Source: Rebecca billardiae RCC1528 (taxonomy: Eukaryota > Protista > Haptophyta). From it: a stretch of 64,000 nucleotides of DNA. The DNA lies in NCBI GenBank assembly GCA_965240325.2, contig OZ251243.1, positions 558,001 to 622,000 on the forward strand, written 5' to 3'. Under the pieces are notes generated by a model, which saw only the letters and a program-made list of their open reading frames with translations, searched no databases and was not told the DNA's origin. The position numbers were made by a program, and so were the translations under genes. Positions 2,910-28,104 of this stretch are shown here, in pieces (the stretch's first letter is position 1; every line of letters begins with the position of its first letter).

Positions 2910-3985
2910 GGTGCGGACGCGCCTGGCGTGGCCCCGCGATGTTGCCCGCCACCACGGCCCACCGCGACGCGCTCGTCAACGCGCGTCCCGTATGTTCACG
3001 CCCACCCTCACCAGGGCAATTCGCGACCCTACTAGGATACCATTTTCTGGTCTTGGTCATCAGTTCCAAGCTTCTTCACCCGGGCAAGGGAGTCCCTTAT
3101 TCCGGCTCTCTTCCCCAGCCCGGTCCGGACTGCGCCGCCATCGTGCGAGTGCGATGGCGAGGCTACCAGCCAGAGCATGGGTGAGGGCAGCGGCCGCCTC
3201 CCGCCTCGCGGCGCCCGCGCCATCGCCCGTCGTCCTTGCCCCACACGCTACTCGAGTTCTCTTGTGGACGGGGGTGTCACCCACCGTTTCAGGAGTGTCC
3301 CTTAGTCGCGACTGGACGGCGCAGCCGGCTACGCTTGGGGCTCGCACCCTGGCGCTCATCCTCGCTACGATGCGATCAGACGCGGCGCGACTGGAGCACA
3401 CATTCGCGCACGAGATCGCGCCAAATGCGTTGGCGACCTACCATGGCGGCGGCGCAGCCGTGCGCGAGCGGACGCGTGAGAGCAGTGGGAGCCATCGTGC
3501 GCCAGCAGCGAGCATCTGAGACACGTGTGGCACACGTGCTTCGGCCACTGGGGGCGCGCGTGAAGGAGCTGCGAGCAGTGATCGCGACAAACGGCTGCCC
3601 ACTCCCCGTGCGAGCGGACGCCGAGCCCGCCACGTGGGAAGCGTGCCGTGTGGCTGCGCAAGAGGAGTACGCGCCGTCGTTGTCGACCGGCACAGCGCGT
3701 CGAGATGGATTCTGAGATTGTGCAGCTCAGCTCGGGGCAGCCGGCAGGCACGGGCTCCTTCCTGCTGCGCGCGATGCGCGCGATGCGCGCAGCCGGTGCT
3801 GCACGAGCGGGCGTCTCTCGCTCCTCTCGATGCGCACGTCCCACGCTATGATGGCGCGTATCCTCGTCGCCGGGAGCGCCTTGCCCAGGAATTGATGGGA
3901 ATCGATCGATTTTCGCTGAAAAGTTTCGTCGACGAAGAACTACACGCCTTAACCAAGTGTGCACGTTAAAACATAGTAAACTGTA

Positions 3986-5749
3986 GTGATGGAGCCCGTC
4001 GTCTTCACGACGACCTCTTATGGCTCGCTTGACGACTGGCGGTGCCAGCTGGCGCTGGCCACGTGCTCGGCGTGCGCAGCGCTGGGGTACCCACTCATCG
4101 TCTGCGACGCCTCGCCCGACGCCCAGATCGGCGCGCGCTTCGCCGCCCTCGGCGCGACGGTCGTGCGGCAGGTCGGCGCCGGCGCCAAGGGCGACGCCCT
4201 CCGGCAGGCGCTCGCGCGCGCGGCTGAGCTGGCTCGCGGCGCGGCGGGACCGCGGCTGCTCGCGTTCCAGGAGCCTGAGAAGACCGACATGGTCTCGCAC
4301 TGGGCCGCCGTGTGCGCGCACGTGTGTGCGTGCGGCCCGCCGACCGGCGTCGCCGTCGTGCCGGCGCGCCACGGCCGCCTCTTCCGCGACAGCTACGCGC
4401 GCGAGCAACACGAGTCGGAGACGTTCCTGAACACGGCGCTGAACGCGCTCGCCGCGGGTGCCGGGCTGCGCACCGCCCTCGACTGGGCCTTCGGCCCGTT
4501 CGCGCTCAGCCCGGACCTCGCGCACGTGTGGCTTTCGTGTGATGGAGCGCTCTGGGAGGCGCAGCTGGCTGGCATTGCGCGCGCGTGGCGCGGCGGCGCG
4601 CGCGTGCTCGCGGTTGAGGTGGCGTACCGCCACCCGCCCGCGCAGAAGGCGGCGGAGGAGGGCAAGGTCGAGTGGGTGCTCAAGCGTGCCGAGCAGCTCA
4701 GCCGCCTGGTCCCCCTGATGCACGCCGAGTTTGCGCGCGCGCCGCAATCGTCGCTGGCGCGCGACGGCGGCGCACCCGGCTCCGACGGCGGCGGCGGCGC
4801 GGGCAAGCTGGTGCTGATCACGGGCGCGGGCGGGAACCTCGGCGTGAAGATTGCGCGGCACCTGCTCGTACACGCCCAGCCGCACCGCGTGCGCCTGCTC
4901 GACCGCCTCGATACCGACGCGGTGCGCGCTCGGCTGCTTGGCGGCGCGGCCGCCGCGGTCGTCGCGGCGGTCTCGGCCGCGCCGGAGCGCGTGGAGGCGT
5001 TACAGCTGGACCTGTGCGAGTGGAGCGGCGCGCTCGTGCGCGCGATGCACGGCGTGGACGCGTGCATCCACCTCGCCGCGCAGAACCCCTTCCCCGAGGC
5101 CAGCTGGGCGGACTGCGCCGCCTCGTGCGACATCCACGCACACGTGCTCGAGGCGGCCGCACGGGCACACGTGCCACGGCTGCTGCTGGCGTCGTCCAAT
5201 CACGTGCTCGGGAACCACTGGCGGGACGGCGCGGAGCTGCGGCCGGAGGAAGGGGCGGGCGCGCTCGGCGCTGGCGCGGAGCTGCGCCCCGGCACGCGCT
5301 TCGACCTCGCCCCCGTCGCCGCGATGGACTGCATGCCCTACGCCGCCGCAAAGCTCTTCGGCGAGCGTCTGGGCGCGGCGGTGGCGCGCTGCTCGCCGTC
5401 GACCCGAGTGCTGGCCGTGCGGATCGGCTGGTGCCAGCCCGGCGAGAATCGGCCCGCGACACTCTCGGTGACGGGCACGCCGACCATCGCGGAGGGCGCG
5501 TCGGCCGAGCCGCCGCACGGGCCCGACGCCGCGGCGCGGCACACCATCGAGGCGTGGTTCAAGTCGATGTGGCTCTCGAACGCCGACCTCGGACGGCTGG
5601 TCGACGCAGCGCTGAGCGCCGACCTGAGCGCGCTGCCCAGATCCGATCTCGTCGTGCTGAACGGCGTCTCGGCCAACGCGCGCTCGCGCTGGAGCGTGGA
5701 GAACCCGATCGGGTACGGGCCCCAGGAGGACGTGCACGCTGCGGCGTGA
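3986..5749 (+). CDS. Fusion of a GT-A-like N-terminal domain and an NAD-dependent epimerase/dehydrogenase (uronate dehydrogenase-like extended SDR)
   Basis: C-half has LITGAGGNLG, HLAA, ASSNH, YAAAK, RIGW and MWLS..D; N-half has LIVCDASPD, KGDALRQA, FQEPEK and DWAFGP; Gly linker between the halves; intronless. Confidence 0.8.
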   Translation: MMEPVVFTTTSYGSLDDWRCQLALATCSACAALGYPLIVCDASPDAQIGARFAALGATVVRQVGAGAKGDALRQALARAAELARGAAGPRLLAFQEPEKTDMVSHWAAVCAHVCACGPPTGVAVVPARHGRLFRDSYAREQHESETFLNTALNALAAGAGLRTALDWAFGPFALSPDLAHVWLSCDGALWEAQLAGIARAWRGGARVLAVEVAYRHPPAQKAAEEGKVEWVLKRAEQLSRLVPLMHAEFARAPQSSLARDGGAPGSDGGGGAGKLVLITGAGGNLGVKIARHLLVHAQPHRVRLLDRLDTDAVRARLLGGAAAAVVAAVSAAPERVEALQLDLCEWSGALVRAMHGVDACIHLAAQNPFPEASWADCAASCDIHAHVLEAAARAHVPRLLLASSNHVLGNHWRDGAELRPEEGAGALGAGAELRPGTRFDLAPVAAMDCMPYAAAKLFGERLGAAVARCSPSTRVLAVRIGWCQPGENRPATLSVTGTPTIAEGASAEPPHGPDAAARHTIEAWFKSMWLSNADLGRLVDAALSADLSALPRSDLVVLNGVSANARSRWSVENPIGYGPQEDVHAAA

Positions 5750-19744: not shown

Positions 19745-21199
19745 TCACTCGTCGGTCGACGACGCGGCGCCGGGCGCGAGCACGCGGTTCACGAGCGCGA
19801 GCGTGGCCAGCGAGCCGAGCGTGGTCATCACGCGCTCGCCGAGCGTGAGCGCGCGCTGCACGAGGGCACGGTACCTGCCGTACGTGCCCGACGCGTCCTC
19901 GGCGACGATGCGGAACACCATCGGCACGCACAAGCCCTCGAGGAAGCGCACGCTCGTCACCGACGTGACGAGCAGCGCGCACGCCGCAGGACCGGCGCAC
20001 GCCGCCGCGCGCTCGCCCGCGAGCGCGAGTGCGAGCGGCACGCTGACGAGCAGCGCCATCGCGCCCATCTGCGCGTTGAGGGAGTAGCGGTGCGTCTCGG
20101 TGCGCAGCGAGAGCAGCGCGCCGCCCAGCAGCCCGAAGAAGCTGAGCTGCTGCGTCAGCCCCAGCAGCTCGTCTGCAGCGCCCGCGCGCGCGTGCGCAGG
20201 CAGCGCGCGGTGCGCGGCATACGGCAGCACGCCGGGCGTGACGCCCCAGACGACGCTCTGGATCGCGGTGTAGCGCAGCCACAGGCTGAGCGCGCACGCG
20301 ACCCACGGCGGCGGCGGGAAGCCGAGCCGCGCGCTCGCCGGCGGCGCGACGAGCGGCGTGCGCAGCGCGTGCTCGCCGCACGCATCGGCGGCGCACGTGC
20401 CGTCCCCCGCCGCGTGCGGCCGCGGCCCTGCGGCCATGGGACTCTGGTCCAAGGCTGGTGAGTGCGCGAGCGCGTCCTTGAGCGCCGGCGCGCGCTCGGC
20501 GTGGCGCGGCGAGACGGGCGCCACCCCGGCACGGCGCAGCCCGATGCCCCACCGCTTGATCGCGCAGAGCGCGAACGCGCTCGGCAGCGCCAGCATCGCC
20601 ACAGCTGCCAGGAAGGCCGATGGGGAGAAGCGCGGCGCCGAGCCCGGGCGCTGGACGAGAGCGAGCAGGGCCGTAGCGCCGGCGGCGAGCGTGCCGCCGA
20701 GCACGGTGGCGCCGATCAGCCGCGGCTCGTGCTGTAGCTGCCAGGGCATCATGATCACCATCTTGGCGCTGCCCAGCAGGCCCGCCACGAAGCTCAGGGC
20801 CAGAAGTGCATGCGAGTGCTGCGCCGAGTGCTGGTGCCAGCACAGCGCGCCCAAGCCCAGCCCGAGGAGTGTGGTCGCCATCGTGCCCACCATGAGGCAC
20901 TCGTCCAGCCGGTGCCGACTGCTCCGACGCAGCGCGCGCGAGCGCCCGCTGCTCGCGCGCTGGTTCGCAACAAAAACTCCGAGCAGCAGCGGCACCGAGC
21001 AGAGCGAGCCCGCGCTTGTCGCCGAGCCCATCCACGCGGCGAGGGCGAGGCCCTCGGGCTGCACGCGCTGGAAGCACGGGATCTGCATCATCAGCGCGTC
21101 AAGGAGCAGCCAGCCCTGCCCCAATGACACCAACGCGAACGCCGCAAAGGCCACGGGCTCGTGGCCTTTGCACATCGGCGGCACAGCCGCGTCCGCCAT
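19745..21199 (-). CDS. SLC52/RFVT (riboflavin transporter)-like multi-pass membrane protein
   Basis: N-terminal LGQGWLLLDALMMQIP..QPEGLALAAW resembles SLC52 GMGSW..NG.W.ELP...PEGWSLPSY; RFSPSAF motif; ~11 hydrophobic segments. Confidence 0.75.
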   Translation of the reverse strand: MADAAVPPMCKGHEPVAFAAFALVSLGQGWLLLDALMMQIPCFQRVQPEGLALAAWMGSATSAGSLCSVPLLLGVFVANQRASSGRSRALRRSSRHRLDECLMVGTMATTLLGLGLGALCWHQHSAQHSHALLALSFVAGLLGSAKMVIMMPWQLQHEPRLIGATVLGGTLAAGATALLALVQRPGSAPRFSPSAFLAAVAMLALPSAFALCAIKRWGIGLRRAGVAPVSPRHAERAPALKDALAHSPALDQSPMAAGPRPHAAGDGTCAADACGEHALRTPLVAPPASARLGFPPPPWVACALSLWLRYTAIQSVVWGVTPGVLPYAAHRALPAHARAGAADELLGLTQQLSFFGLLGGALLSLRTETHRYSLNAQMGAMALLVSVPLALALAGERAAACAGPAACALLVTSVTSVRFLEGLCVPMVFRIVAEDASGTYGRYRALVQRALTLGERVMTTLGSLATLALVNRVLAPGAASSTDE

Positions 21200-21338
21200 C
21201 GGTCCGAGCACTCCGACCGGTCACGCGCTGTCCGCCATTGTTCCCGAGGAGTAAGTACTGAGCAGTCCGGGCACGAAATCACTCCGGCAGGAAGTGGCGC
21301 GCATCACGTCACCTGCTTCCGCCATCCGGCGTCACGCG

Positions 21339-22970
21339 ATGCTCGCGCTGCGCGCTCGGCGGGCTGGCGCGTGCCGTGCCACCGGCGCGCCGGCGGGCCC
21401 GTGGGGCCGCGTGCTAGCCGCACGCCCCTTGCACGCCACCCCCGCCCCGCGCATCTGGCCGCTCGTCGCCGGCATCGGCGTCGCGACCGCTGCATACGCC
21501 GTGAGGCTGGCGCTGAACGCCGCGCGCGAGCAGGAGGCGGCCGAACGGCGGGGCGAGTCGGCGCGCGACGACGCCGAGGGTTCGTCGGCCTCGTCCAGCA
21601 CACATGCCGCCTCCGCCTCGGCCGCGGCGTCCGCGCAGGCCGCGGCCGCGGCCAGCGCGGCGACCGGTGGCGGTGGCGGCGTGCTTGCCCCCGTCCTGGC
21701 CATCTCCGTGGGCGACAGCGGCCTACGGCTGGCGCTGGCGTCGGCCGGCGCGGCCGGCGCACGGGTGATCGAGACGCCCGAGGGTGCCCGCGCCTTCCCG
21801 GCCGCGTACATGGTGGCGCGTGACGGCGAGGTGGTCGTCGGCGCGGCCGCGCTCCGCCGCCGCTTTGAGGCCGGCGCGGCGGTCGCCACTGACGCCACCA
21901 TGCGCCTGGGCGCGCGGATGGCGAGCGGCGATGGCGCGGAGGAGGGCGCGGCGGGCGGCGCGGCCGAGGCCGCCGACCCTTGGGCCTCCGCATTCGGCGC
22001 AGGCCGCGCGCCCCTCGTCGCCGCGCCCGACGGCAGCCTCGCCTACCGGCTGCACTCGGCAGTGCGCACCCCCGCACACGCGGTCGCGGCCGTCCTCGGG
22101 CACGCCAAGGGCGTGGCGGAGGAGGCGGCGGGGCGCAAGCTGTGGCGCGCGGTGCTCGCCGTGCGCGCGGGGGCGGACGACACGCACGTCGACGCCGCGC
22201 GCGCCGCTGCCGCGGAGTGCGGGCTGCTCGGCGCCGCCGTCGTGCCGGCGCCGGTCGCGGCGTTGGAGGCGGCGCGCGCCGTGGCCGGCGACGGCGGCGG
22301 CGGTGCGGCCAGTGCCGCCGACGGAGTCGCCGTCGTGTATCACATGGGCGCGCGGCGCGCGAGCGCCACGGTGCTCTCCGCGACGGGTGCGGAACCCCCG
22401 CGCGTGCTCGCCGTGGCCGAGACCACGGCCGCCGGCGGCGACCGTTACGACCGCTCGGTGGTCGACTGGCTCGTGGGCGCGTTTAGTCGGGAGCATGGCG
22501 AGGGCATTGAGCTGCGCGCAGACCCTCTCGCGCTCTCGCGGCTGCTGGACGCGGCGAGCAAGGCGCGGCACGAGCTGTCGAGCGCGCCCGCGACGGTGGT
22601 CGAGCTCCCGTTCATCACCGCCGACGCGAGCGGGCCGAAGCACCTGCGCGCCGAGCTCTCACGAGCGGCCTTTGAGTCTCTCGTCGCGGACGGACTGACG
22701 GAGGCGGCGGTGGCTGAGACGGTGCCGCGAGCGCTCGCGGCCGCGGGCGTGGACGCGGCGGCGGTGCGGGTGCTCGTGCTGAGTGGCGGGCTGCTGCGCA
22801 CGCCGCACGTGCGCGCGCGCGTCAGCGCGGCGCTCCCGGCCGCACGCGTGCTGCCGGCCGGCGCGGACGCTGCGGCCGTCAGCCCGGAGGAGCTGTCAGT
22901 GCTTGGCGCCGCGCTGCCGCGCTTTGCGCCGCGCGCGGCGACAGCCGCCGAGGCGTCTCAGGCTGCGTAG
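21339..22970 (+). CDS. Degenerate mtHsp70/DnaK-derived nucleotide-binding domain with presequence and TM anchor, no substrate-binding domain
   Basis: VIETPEGAR, DPLALSRL..AASKARHELSS, LPFITADASGPKHL, LSGG..RTP and VSPEE..LGAA, then stop; Arg-rich leader and TM segment WPLVAGIGVATAAYAVRL. Confidence 0.85.
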   Translation: MLALRARRAGACRATGAPAGPWGRVLAARPLHATPAPRIWPLVAGIGVATAAYAVRLALNAAREQEAAERRGESARDDAEGSSASSSTHAASASAAASAQAAAAASAATGGGGGVLAPVLAISVGDSGLRLALASAGAAGARVIETPEGARAFPAAYMVARDGEVVVGAAALRRRFEAGAAVATDATMRLGARMASGDGAEEGAAGGAAEAADPWASAFGAGRAPLVAAPDGSLAYRLHSAVRTPAHAVAAVLGHAKGVAEEAAGRKLWRAVLAVRAGADDTHVDAARAAAAECGLLGAAVVPAPVAALEAARAVAGDGGGGAASAADGVAVVYHMGARRASATVLSATGAEPPRVLAVAETTAAGGDRYDRSVVDWLVGAFSREHGEGIELRADPLALSRLLDAASKARHELSSAPATVVELPFITADASGPKHLRAELSRAAFESLVADGLTEAAVAETVPRALAAAGVDAAAVRVLVLSGGLLRTPHVRARVSAALPAARVLPAGADAAAVSPEELSVLGAALPRFAPRAATAAEASQAA

Positions 22971-24430: not shown

Positions 24431-24493
24431 TGACGTTACGGCTTGCAGCGCGTCCGCGGCGGCCATCGTGGAGTGTCGTTGGGCCTTGGCGCC

Positions 24494-27400
24494 ATGGCGA
24501 TGGAAGTGCGCCGCGTGATCACGGACGCGCACGACGCGTCCATCCTGTGCGTCACCTTCAACCCGCACCGCCGCGAGCTCATCACAGGCGCGCAGGATGG
24601 CCACATCAAGGTTGGCGCGCGAGAGCGCGCAGCGCGCGCACGTGTGTGCGCGGGACGCGAGCGCACCCGCCGACGCGGCGCGCGCGCCTCGGCGGGCGCC
24701 TGCGCGCGGCGGCGCGCGCAGATGTGGGACAATGACACCGGCAAACACACGCGCACGCTCGTCGACGGCCACCTCGGCTGGGTCACGGGGCTCGCGTACG
24801 GGTCGGCGCAGCGCATGCTCTTCAGCTGCTCGATCGACTCTCAGCTCATCGTGTGGGACACGCGGAACAAGGGCGAGTGGTTCCAGAAGGTGAAGACGGG
24901 CGGGCAGGCGCACTGCGTCGCGTGGGACAACCGCCGCCAGCTCGTGCTCGTCGGCGGCGACTCCGTCATCCGCATGTTCGCCGTGCTAGCCGATAACGCG
25001 ATCGATCCGTCGCGCCGGCCCGAGCGTCCGATCCTCAAGCTGGCGGCGACGGTGAAGAACGCGCACGAGGGGCTGGTGCGCGGGATCTCGGTGAACGAGT
25101 CGGGCCGCGTCTTCTCCGCTGGGTACGACGCCACGCTCACGATGTACGACATCGTCGACGCGCCGCAAGCGCGCGCGCGCACGGTGGACCGCGCGGACGG
25201 CGCCGCAACTGACCTGGAGCTCGCCTCTGGCGGCACGGCGGCGGCCAAGGCGGCGGCGGCGAAGGGGGCGGCGGCGAAGGGGGCGGGTGGCGCCGGCGCG
25301 ATCTCGAAGCTCGCGCTGCCCTCCGCCGCCGGGCCCAAGCCAACCGCCCCGCCGGCCGGCTCGGACGAGCGCATGCCCATCCTCGAGCAGCGCGGCGGCG
25401 CGCTCCGAGGCCACTCGGGGGCGATCTCTGCACTTGCGTTCGACGGCGAGAACAGCCTGACGATCACGGGGTCGTTCGACAAGCAGGTGAAGATCTGGTC
25501 GCCCGAGGGCAAGCTGCTCCAGACCTTCGGCCCGCTCGTCGACACGCTCACCGGCGTGTGCTACGTCCCCGCCAACAAGTCGGTCTGGGTCGCGACCAAC
25601 TCGATCACACCGGTCGTCTTCGACGCTCGCACCGGGACCAACATCACGGGCTTTGTGCAGCCGCCGACGGTGCGCTCGATCGTGCGCGGCGTGCGCGCGT
25701 CGGGGAACGTGCCCGCCGGGACCGCCGACGACGAGGCCGCCGCGCTCGACGAGCGCGGCGGCACGCGCGGCCCGGCCATCCCCGCCGAGCGGCTGCTCCG
25801 CCTCTTCTCGAACCCACTGACGAATGAGGTGGTCGGCGCCACCTCGACGCGCGACCTGGTGATCTGGCGCTTCAACCCGCACGGCGCGGCGTCGGTGCTG
25901 TCCGGGCACTCGGACTGGGTGGAGACGGTGTGCTTCACGCACAAGCCCGAGCTGGAGGTCGCGGCCGAGCCGCTCGTCGTCCTCTTCTCCGCGGGCTCGG
26001 ACGGCACGGTCCGGCAGTGGGAGCCCACCTCCAGGCTGAATGCGTACCTGTACACTGAGGCGGGCAGCTCGGTCGGACACGACGGGCCTATCCTGTGCGG
26101 CGCGTTCTGCGAAGCGGCGAACGCGTACGTGAGCGGCTCTGACGACTGCACGATACGCGTGTGGTACCAGCCGACCACCGCGCAGGCCGCCGCCGCCGCG
26201 CGCGCCGCGCACGGCTTCGGGGTGGAGGAGGAGGCGGAGGCGGCGGCTGCGACGTCCGCAACGGCCGCCGCGACCGTGCCGGCGCGCGCGCCGGCCGCGC
26301 ACGCGCCCGCGGCCGGCGCGCCGGGCAGCGCGGCGGAGGCCGACGCGCCGGCGAGCGACGAGGCCGGCGCGCCAGCCCCCGCCACCGATCCGCTCGACGG
26401 CGCGTCCTTCGGCCCGGCCCACGCCGCCGGCGGCGCCGCCTCCGCCTTCGTCCCGCCGGGCACCGCAGGCTCGACCGTGACGACCACCACACTCGCGGGG
26501 CTGTCTCTGGTCGCCCTTGGCCTTGACGACCACGCGCCCGCGGCCGCGCCGTCGGCGGATGAGCTGCTCGCCGCGGCGGAGCTCGCGGGCGCCGCCGCCG
26601 CCGCCGAGTATGTCGAGGCCACCGTCTGCGTGCTCGAGGGCCACGAGGAGCGCGTGACCGGCCTCGTGATCCTCGGCGTGCCGAGCCCGGCCGGCACGAT
26701 CGTGTCGTGCTCGTGGGACCTGACTGTGCGCTGGTGGCAGCTGATGCCTGGGAGCGCGGTCGGGTACGAAGAAGTGCACACGATCGAGAACGCGCATGAT
26801 GACCACATCCACGGCATCGCGTACGCGCCGAGCACGCACCAGGTCGCCACCTGCTCGGCGGACCAGGGCGTCAAGATCTGGGACGCCTCTCGGTACAGCC
26901 TCGTCGCGACGCTCTCCGGCCATCTCTCCGACGTGACGGAAGTCTCGTGGAACCCCGTGTTCGGCGTCTGGATGACGGGCTCGGACGACCAGACCATTCG
27001 CGTGTGGACGACGCTCGGGCAGGAGCTGCGCGCGATCGACGCGCGCGACGCGGTCTCCGCCCTCGCCACCGACCTGAACCACGGGTACCTGCTGGCCGCG
27101 TGCAACGAGCGCCAGTGCGGGCTGCGCGTGTACGACCTGGGCCTCGAGCTGAGCTCGACCGCTGTCTCGGCCGGCGCGGGCGTGGCCGGCAGCGGGGAAC
27201 GCGGCGCCGAGGGGCCGGGTGGGGCGGAGCCGAGCGCGGCGGCGGCGGCGGCGAGCAGCGGCGCCGCCGCGCCCGCGCGCCGCGCCTCGGCCGGCGGCGC
27301 GCTGCTCCGCAGCCGCGGCTCGCACGCCGAGCTGCTCGGCGTGGGCGTGCGCACGGTCGGCGAGTATTTCCTCCTGCAGACGCACTACGGGCACACCGAC

Positions 27401-28104
27401 TGCATCCGAGACATCGTACACGTGGCCGAGAAGGGGCACTATGTGACCGCGTCGTGGGACCACACGCTGCGCACGTGGCGGCAGGCGGGCGGCAAGCGGC
27501 GCGGCAGCGGCGCGCCGCCGGCCGCGCGCGGCGCGGCGCACGGCGCCGCCGCGCGCCGCGCCGCGCTCTCGTCCACAGTCGGCAGCCGGCCGACCACCGG
27601 CGCCGACGGCGCGGACGAGGAGGTGACGATGACGTACGCAGACAAGCACCCGCTGCAGAAGCCGAAGGCCCTGCAGAAGGACCTCTCGCAGCTCGGCGTG
27701 GGCACGCGGCAAGAAGGTGGCCAAGCGGTGAGCGCGCTCGGCGCGCGCCCCCTCCTCGCCATCCCCCGCGCGCGGTGCTCACGCGCAGCCTCGCGCACTC
27801 TCTCTCTCGCGCGCGCGCGCGCGCGCAGGCGCGCGGGCGGCGGCAGCGCAAGCCGGTGGATGAGCTGCTCAGCAAGTCCGCCGGGCAGACGGGGATGGCC
27901 CTGCGGCTGAACGATCTGCTCACGGACAAGCAGACGCAGCTCGACACTCAGATGTTCCGCGCGCTCTCGCAGATGCCGCCTAGCACCAAGCGAAATGTGT
28001 CTGGCACCACCGGCGGCGCCGCGCCGCGCAAAGCTGAGACGCTCGCGCCGAAGCGCGGGAATGTGCGGCGGAGCTTCACGGCGCAGCCGTCGGGCCATCC
28101 TTGA
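24494..28104 (+). CDS. Large WD40-repeat protein; exons 24494-24610, 24722-27727, 27829-28104
   Basis: More than 12 GH..WD-type repeats; in-frame intron 24611-24721 (joins HIK|MWD) and phase-0 intron 27728-27828. Confidence 0.88.

Follow-up and report, generated by a model that had tools for sequence, protein, structure and literature searches.

A membrane-anchored pseudo-Hsp70 of the DnaK class in Rebecca billardiae and its family in haptophytes and stramenopiles

What remains for an Hsp70 to do when its nucleotide-binding domain (NBD) has lost its catalytic residues, its substrate-binding domain (SBD) is missing and a membrane anchor precedes what is left? The question is raised by a gene on the forward strand of a 64,000-nucleotide stretch of the haptophyte Rebecca billardiae RCC1528 (contig 26, OZ251243.1, positions 558,001-622,000; hereafter the window), which belongs to a eukaryotic assembly of 72 Mb in 41 contigs with 65-75% GC. 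As judged by comparison and structural modelling, the gene is almost certainly functional, conserved and single-copy, and a member of an undescribed haptophyte/stramenopile family. The proteins of this family join a presequence, a transmembrane helix rich in small residues and a charged linker to a complete DnaK-class NBD, and end without interdomain linker or SBD. Lys70 (E. coli DnaK numbering is used for catalytic residues) is lost family-wide, and D8, E171, D194 and T199 are lost in the pavlovophyte-type clade; hence no ATP hydrolysis is expected, and normal nucleotide binding is improbable in that clade.

An earlier note on this DNA had described the gene product as a membrane-tethered, SBD-less and catalytically dead NBD of the mitochondrial Hsp70 (mtHsp70) kind, a description that family scans, alignment and an AlphaFold model bear out for the DnaK/mtHsp70 class. 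The surrounding open reading frame spans 21294-22970 on the forward strand, and the ATG at 21339 gives a protein of 543 amino acids (aa) that ends at a TAG stop. The gene occurs once in the genome. Its main parts are as follows.

21339-22970, forward strand: complete single-exon coding sequence of the membrane-anchored pseudo-Hsp70 (543 codons plus the TAG stop), recognized from the open frame, a 99%-identical copy and orthologues.
21684-22919, forward strand: complete four-subdomain Hsp70 NBD of the DnaK class, aa 116-527, recognized from profile matches, AlphaFold, Foldseek and the tree.
22920-22967, forward strand: short C-terminal tail of 16 aa replacing interdomain linker and SBD; tails measure 4-24 aa in all family members, transcript-derived ones included.

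The window protein matches the Pfam HSP70 family (PF00012) over aa 243-498 (E=1.6e-32; 112.9 bits against a cut-off of 20.6) and the NCBIfam DnaK profile over aa 138-526, equivalent to DnaK 21-369 (2e-45). The latter score, 155 bits, stays below the equivalog cut-offs for canonical DnaK (648 and 822). Among solved structures the top relative is the E. coli DnaK NBD (1dkg_D; E=1.3e-35, aa 120-498 aligned to DnaK 5-356), with human mortalin also among the best; human cytosolic Hsp70s rank behind these, at only about 1e-12. Within the genome the closest paralogue is a two-exon mtHsp70 on contig 12, with 32% identity. The chain ends 16 aa past the last NBD helix, and the protein contains neither a VLLL-type interdomain linker nor an SBD. 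A spliced downstream exon encoding the SBD, which the earlier note had named as a finding that would overturn its reading, was not found near the locus, where a whole-genome six-frame PF00012 scan detects an NBD only. An AlphaFold2 model computed from a 16-member family alignment reached a mean predicted local distance difference test score (pLDDT) of 79.7 and a predicted TM-score of 0.75, with most of the NBD above 90. In Foldseek the modelled NBD superposes on the NBDs of DnaK and mortalin with E-values of about 1e-31 and target TM-scores of 0.81-0.90.

Within this intact fold the nucleotide site is eroded. The following elements were located by alignment.

21696-21722, forward strand: degenerate phosphate-1 loop LAISVGDSG (DnaK IGIDLGTTN), with D8>S, T11>D and T12>S.
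21894-21905, forward strand: site of the catalytic Lys70-Arg71 pair, here T187-M188; the Lys is absent from every family member.
22242-22262, forward strand: VPAPVAA replacing INEPTAA, with catalytic Glu171>Ala and T173>V.
22335-22364, forward strand: degenerate phosphate-2 loop VYHMGARRAS (DnaK VYDLGGGTFD), with D194>H, G198-T199>R-R and D201>S.
22782-22805, forward strand: partly kept adenosine motif SGGLLRTP (DnaK VGGQTRMP).

D8, K70, E171, D194 and T199 are thus all replaced in the window protein, by S, T/M, A, H and R, respectively, and each of the four motif erosions originally listed for it (GIDLGTT>AISVGDS, K70-R71>T-M, NEPTAA>PAPVAA and DLGGGT>HMGARR) is present. In the adenosine motif, G483 is invariant in the family and G484 and R487 are nearly so, while P489 does not vary in the eight-row DnaK alignment. 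Position 70 is occupied by T, S, Q, H, P or R across the family, R being the oomycete residue. Stramenopile-type members, which also do without Lys70, retain D8, E171, D194 and the two glycines of the adenosine motif; the pavlovophyte-type clade has lost D8, E171, D194 and T199 as well and has fixed Arg-Arg in its phosphate-2 loop. The window gene reads as an especially eroded member of the family. Because the catalytic residues are gone, the window protein is predicted to be unable to hydrolyse ATP, and normal nucleotide binding is unlikely in its clade.

Erosion of this kind is shared with relatives. A word-based protein search returned three of them, namely the 99%-identical copy and two orthologues at 46% and 44% identity, all of which have the anchor and the same catalytic-site substitutions in common with the window protein. 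The copy lies in an independent assembly (ERR14847148) beside the same divergent upstream neighbour and differs from the window gene at five sites, three non-synonymous and two synonymous. The orthologues are 44-50% identical overall and preserve the frame; in the one at 44%, the called start omits an Arg-rich presequence of 30 aa, which can be read upstream of it. Two further word-based searches, a method swamped by DnaKs, added no named family members. An exhaustive profile search recovered, besides thousands of DnaKs, proteins of 415-736 aa with the same architecture: a presequence with an R-x-[FL]-[HR]-[AT]-T end, the conserved anchor, a basic and then acidic linker, a DnaK-type NBD and a tail of 4-24 aa. 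Named members are Diacronema lutheri KAG8470469.1 (haptophyte, Pavlovophyceae), Mallomonas marina MMETSP1167 (from a synurophyte transcript) and the oomycete proteins Pythium oligandrum TMW68390.1, Pythium insidiosum KAJ0399291.1 and Nothophytophthora RLN72340.1; databases annotate all named members as 'hypothetical protein' or, automatically, as 'DnaK'. A 28-member Tara Oceans cluster also belongs to the family. Since the Mallomonas member derives from a transcriptome, the SBD-less form is expressed. Where the earlier note had left room for a gene lacking orthologues and expression, there are orthologues and one transcribed family member; its suggestion of a lineage-specific component does not stand, the family being found in haptophytes and stramenopiles, non-photosynthetic oomycetes included.

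Two oomycete proteins depart from the common layout. P0101 (Pythium insidiosum, 736 aa) and P0157 (Nothophytophthora, 623 aa) carry extensions of about 160-330 aa before the presequence-like segment, which may reflect a gene model fused to its upstream neighbour or a genuine variant; in P0101 the transmembrane helix is not recognizable. An ESM Atlas match of the Pythium member led to generic eukaryotic Hsp70 clusters of 434-556 aa and was rejected as evidence of membership.

In a maximum-likelihood tree of NBDs, 15 family members form one clade inside the DnaK class (Shimodaira-Hasegawa-like approximate likelihood ratio test, SH-aLRT, 99), apart from the genome's cytosolic and endoplasmic reticulum (ER) Hsp70s (support 100), and the window protein groups with Diacronema-type sequences (support 100). 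The tree, in which the genome's mtHsp70 was represented by exon 1 only, does not resolve the family as its sister. This placement traces the family back to the DnaK class, near its proteobacterial and mitochondrial members. The closest neighbour of the family, with weak support (SH-aLRT 80), is P0059, an anchorless DnaK-like protein of 418 aa that consists of an NBD only and is encoded on a 225,898-bp bacterial contig. P0059 and the family share the derived states T11>D (GIHFGDA) and T173>V (DEPVAA) and a replaced K70. A truncated DnaK paralogue of bacteria, rather than mtHsp70, may be the ancestor of the family.

If the catalytic core has decayed, the question becomes which surface has been kept, and one subdomain stands out.

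22431-22688, forward strand: subdomain IIB, about aa 365-450, with helix DPLALSRLLDAASKARHELSS and hairpin LPFITADASGPKHL (22605-22646), the best-kept part of the NBD.

Identity of the window protein to DnaKs is 0.31 in subdomain IA, 0.18 in IB, 0.26 in IIA and 0.55 in IIB, and it retains 77% of the DnaK-invariant columns in IIB as against 33-45% elsewhere. The same holds in every one of the nine family members compared, which cover all clades of the tree: IIB is their most DnaK-like subdomain (0.43-0.54; other subdomains 16-44%). Of the 22 residues that never vary in the 16-member alignment, approximately 16 fall in IIB. In the genome's working cytosolic and ER Hsp70s the ranking is turned round: identities to DnaKs are 0.66 in IA, 0.42 in IB, 0.50 in IIA and 0.38 in IIB, the last being the lowest in each (0.37-0.38). 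Pairwise dN/dS (the ratio of non-synonymous to synonymous divergence, by the Nei-Gojobori method) among three pavlovophyte-type genes is 0.43-0.58 over the NBD, lowest in IIB (0.26-0.51) and 0.6-0.95 in the linker; with GC at third codon positions (GC3) of 0.79-0.90, dS is compressed, so that these values are overestimates and weak evidence alone. The initial impression that IIB is by far the best preserved part of the protein is therefore upheld by identity, by invariant columns and by the subdomain ratios. Because IIB is the most DnaK-like subdomain in this family and the least DnaK-like in working cytosolic and ER Hsp70s, the core appears to have drifted while IIB was held under a DnaK-specific constraint. 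The comparison supports the view that selection has singled out IIB as a functional surface.

The DnaK-class-specific proteins GrpE and ClpB, both located in the matrix, are the partners that such a surface brings to mind. The genome encodes two GrpE genes, on contig 7 near 2,397,934 and on contig 10 near 2,546,231, and several ClpB-type genes, along with Tim44, Pam16 and Tim14. In the 1DKG structure, 20 DnaK residues contact GrpE (PMC2940730, Table S1). Equivalents of L257, R261, E264 (as D/E), P284, Y285 (as F/Y), E28, E31, E128 and G132 are kept in the family, as is R56 in the haptophyte clade; Q57, T60, P53, Y130, L131, Q260 and N282 are replaced. L257 and Y285 correspond to L397 and F425 of the window protein, and the same two positions (M229 and Y257 in Mycobacterium tuberculosis) are validated contacts of the ClpB M-domain (PMC8209680). 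Since the kept IIB positions serve GrpE and the ClpB M-domain alike, sequence does not separate GrpE/Mge1 from ClpB/Hsp78. The GrpE interface, as aligned, is compatible in its IIB half and not specifically preserved as a whole, and a GrpE decoy is a plausible hypothesis.

Where the protein would meet such partners depends on its N-terminus, which comprises three segments.

21339-21455, forward strand: Arg-rich presequence, aa 1-39, with 7 K+R and 0 D+E before the transmembrane helix; disordered in the AlphaFold model, with a putative targeting role.
21456-21518, forward strand: transmembrane helix WPLVAGIGVATAAYAVRLALN, aa 40-60, with many small residues (Kyte-Doolittle 1.6 over 19 aa) and conserved in sequence in the family.
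21519-21683, forward strand: basic juxtamembrane stretch followed by a variable linker, acidic or Ala/Ser-rich, aa 61-115 (pLDDT 46-63).

Presequence and transmembrane segment are thus both present as first proposed. The presequence ends in the family motif R-x-[FL]-[HR]-[AT]-T, here R29-T34, a likely processing site. A basic bias ahead of the helix is common to 12 of the 14 members scored, the exceptions being the two with long N-terminal extensions; in most members this segment holds 4-11 K+R and 0-2 D+E. The anchor consensus is P-[LI]-x-A-G-x-G-V-A-x-A-A-Y-G-x-[RK], a Gly/Ala-rich helix with a conserved Pro at its start and a Kyte-Doolittle hydrophobicity of 1.6-2.2 across the family. The AlphaFold model extends a helix over aa 40-79. 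The linker (aa 61-115), a charged segment of low complexity with a dN/dS of 0.6-0.95, is only 8-30% identical between orthologues.

A further claim for the anchor, that it resembles that of Pam18/Tim14 (DNAJC19), did not survive comparison with the genome's own Tim14. A profile of the family anchor scored 6 bits (6.0 for the best domain; E of about 1.7) against Tim14 exon 1, which encodes the transmembrane segment, and unrelated frames scored equally high in a decoy set of 354,488 residues translated in six frames from the same GC-rich genome. A genome search with the N-terminal 69 aa of the window protein returned only chance matches, to a PP2C-type gene and low-complexity DNA. The likeness is that of two small-residue-rich helices and not demonstrable homology. 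Membership in the Pam18/Tim14 (DNAJC19) family is ruled out, as the window protein has no J domain or HPD motif, and the Pfam family scan found no DnaJ/J-domain match in it. The Tim14 used here, picked among 85 J-domain matches, lies on contig 20, with MATPFFVGCGVAAGAMALKGLL at the start of exon 1 and HPDKGGS in the J exon. In this gene (within 510500-516500, minus strand) an intron splits the GGF..ILG segment from the HPDKGGS exon, and ahead of the J exon, in the frame that runs into it, a unit of about 24 codons is directly duplicated (ESARAESARGPAHEGARLSRITLA, twice; about 3945-4200 in reverse-complement coordinates).

We infer a mitochondrial rather than plastid location because of the basic segment before the transmembrane helix, the presence of the family in plastid-less oomycetes and its DnaK-class alphaproteobacterial/mitochondrial ancestry. 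Separately, contig 41 is plastid-like and AT-rich (GC 35%) and carries a dnaK gene (630-aa product) and a clpC-type gene. Among 15 billion proteins this DnaK has neither a named match nor a cluster mate at 90% identity or above, so that the plastid genome of the species seems to be missing from named public records. We assume that the NBD faces the matrix, an orientation favoured by the constraint that keeps IIB DnaK-like, by a transmembrane helix of modest hydrophobicity with an N-terminal Pro, and by the basic stretch that follows the helix in many members.

The explanation we prefer, and hold as tentative, is that the protein serves as a catalytically inert docking platform of the mitochondrial inner membrane, facing the matrix, whose IIB lobe holds Mge1/GrpE or Hsp78/ClpB independently of nucleotide. 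Anchored in the inner membrane with its NBD in the matrix, the pseudo-Hsp70 would offer a DnaK-constrained IIB lobe to a co-chaperone that normally docks on IIB of mtHsp70, Mge1/GrpE being the first candidate and Hsp78/ClpB the second. Because ATP could not release a partner from a dead NBD, the partner would be held regardless of nucleotide and so be retained or concentrated at the membrane, the protein acting as scaffold or buffer.

Several observations weigh against this explanation. The 20 GrpE contacts are not enriched as a set (8 of 20 identical against a background of 33%; Fisher p=0.34), and on its IB/IA side Q57, T60, Y130, L131 and P53 are replaced, partly by family-specific residues such as F/W at position 59. 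Equivalents of the IIB adenosine contacts K270 and S274 are mostly kept, and part of the conservation of IIB could come from retained adenosine binding or fold stability. A dN/dS of 0.4-0.6 is only moderate, though dS is compressed by the GC3 already given. A cleavable presequence directly before a transmembrane helix usually leads to stop-transfer, which leaves the C-terminal domain in the intermembrane space, and to our knowledge GrpE and ClpB are absent from that compartment.

An unlikely alternative makes the protein a subunit, structural or accessory, within an inner-membrane complex, such as a translocase, a respiratory or ATP-synthase supercomplex or a ribosome tether, with the dead fold as a building block, IIB as a new interface and a small-xxx-small transmembrane helix packing on partner helices. 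Dead enzymes recruited into mitochondrial complexes are well known, and the lack of enrichment among GrpE contacts would fit such a role. From haptophytes to stramenopiles the helix is conserved in sequence and not merely in hydrophobicity, which suggests specific helix packing, and conserved residues peculiar to the family are found away from the canonical interfaces (F/W at DnaK position 59; W269 in pavlovophyte-type orthologues). A new interface would, however, not be expected to remain DnaK-like, whereas IIB keeps 77% of DnaK-invariant columns and resembles DnaK more closely than does IIB of working cytosolic Hsp70s.

Topology could also differ from our assumption: the presequence would enter the matrix, the transmembrane helix would arrest in TIM23 and the NBD would remain in the intermembrane space with a partner on that side. 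The order of presequence, transmembrane helix and large C-terminal domain is that of stop-transfer proteins of the Tim50, Mic60 and Sco1 type, and the charge balance around the helix is ambiguous. We nevertheless consider this arrangement improbable, given that the intermembrane space has no known DnaK-class partner and IIB is under DnaK-like constraint. The moderate hydrophobicity, Gly/Ala content and initial conserved Pro of the helix are features tied to matrix passage and re-insertion, and the basic stretch right after it in many members also speaks for the matrix.

Distinctly improbable, too, is a nucleotide sensor or switch that would bind ATP or ADP and, like Ssz1 or a DnaK K70 mutant, leave it unhydrolysed, so that affinity for a partner would follow the adenylate status of the matrix. 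Stramenopile-type members, with D8, E171, D194 and the adenosine glycines in place and only Lys70 missing, could act in this manner, and the mostly kept K270 and S274 equivalents agree with it; in the clade of the window protein, by contrast, all Mg and phosphate ligands are replaced and two Arg occupy the phosphate-2 loop, and the protein is still conserved. Finally, a decaying pseudogene or chance reading frame has next to no probability: long spurious frames are common in the 70-79% GC DNA here, the catalytic motifs are eroded and changes against the 99%-identical copy run three non-synonymous to two synonymous, but the reading is effectively refuted by frame-intact orthologues in no fewer than five named species, drawn from two phyla, and a monophyletic family with shared derived substitutions, and the confident AlphaFold model, the transcript-derived member and the uneven constraint along the protein speak against it as well.

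At 19745-21211 on the reverse strand, divergent to the pseudo-Hsp70 gene, lies a gene whose 488-aa product is a multi-pass membrane protein and has a weak Pfam match to SLC52 riboflavin transporters. The starts of the two genes are only about 127 bp apart, and a bidirectional promoter may serve both. They stay paired in the 99%-identical assembly and not on the contig of the 46% orthologue. Directly downstream, at 24443-27910 on the forward strand, is an open frame of 1155 aa with WD40-like repeats interrupted by Ala-rich low-complexity stretches.

Comparison with known systems delimits what is new. With mtHsp70 (Ssc1/mortalin) and DnaK the window protein shares NBD fold and class, the best sequence and structure matches and the DnaK-type IIB hairpin LPFITADxSGPKHL; unlike them it lacks the SBD, the hydrophobic linker and the catalytic residues, has an N-terminal transmembrane anchor and belongs to a separate, long-branched clade. 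HSPA13/STCH (Hsp70-13), the animal microsomal 'ATPase core', is also an NBD only, with an N-terminal hydrophobic leader and association with membrane or organelle. It has lost the C-terminal peptide-binding domain and kept peptide-independent ATPase activity (PMC12692333). HSPA13 is, however, of the eukaryotic cytosolic/ER class and active, whereas the window family is of the DnaK class, probably mitochondrial and without the catalytic lysine. Placement in the DnaK class and loss of catalytic residues exclude an identity of the window protein with HSPA13/STCH. Hsp70s of the Ssz1/HSPA14 type, in the ribosome-associated complex, are not ATP-driven chaperones; they serve a co-chaperone as scaffold or stable partner. 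Unlike the window family, they are cytosolic and of eukaryotic-class origin, keep a truncated SBD, bind ATP and have no membrane anchor. Pam18/Tim14 and Pam16 of the TIM23 motor likewise place one small-residue-rich transmembrane helix before a matrix domain, and Pam16 is a precedent for a degenerate 'pseudo' co-chaperone; the window protein differs from Pam18/Tim14 in having no J domain, a cleavable-looking presequence and an anchor match at chance level. Plant Hsp70T-1 and Hsp70T-2 are named truncated Hsp70s (PMC10687569). In contrast to the window family, these lack only a C-terminal motif, belong to the cytosolic class and have no anchor. No description of an organellar, transmembrane-anchored, NBD-only Hsp70 was found in the full-text literature searched, the coverage of which is incomplete, so that absence is not proven.

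Hsp70 systems are among the best-studied molecular machines, and the degenerate relatives we know of (Ssz1, HSPA13, HSPA14 and Hsp110) all stem from the eukaryotic cytosolic/ER class. The protein described here would be the first organellar, DnaK-derived pseudo-Hsp70, anchored in a membrane and devoid of both SBD and catalytic lysine. Its family spans two large groups, among them major marine primary producers and the oomycete pathogens of plants and animals. The retained DnaK-type IIB lobe leads to a concrete hypothesis on the partner, GrpE or ClpB, and offers a natural experiment on IIB uncoupled from ATP hydrolysis. More speculatively, and at rather long odds, the family may constitute an extra component of the mitochondrial Hsp70 system of haptophytes and stramenopiles, in which a dead NBD would hold Mge1 (or Hsp78) near the TIM23 motor with no release by ATP, a 'pseudo-Hsp70' counterpart to the 'pseudo-J' protein Pam16. 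Should the protein indeed sit at TIM23, the parts list of the import motor would change outside opisthokonts.

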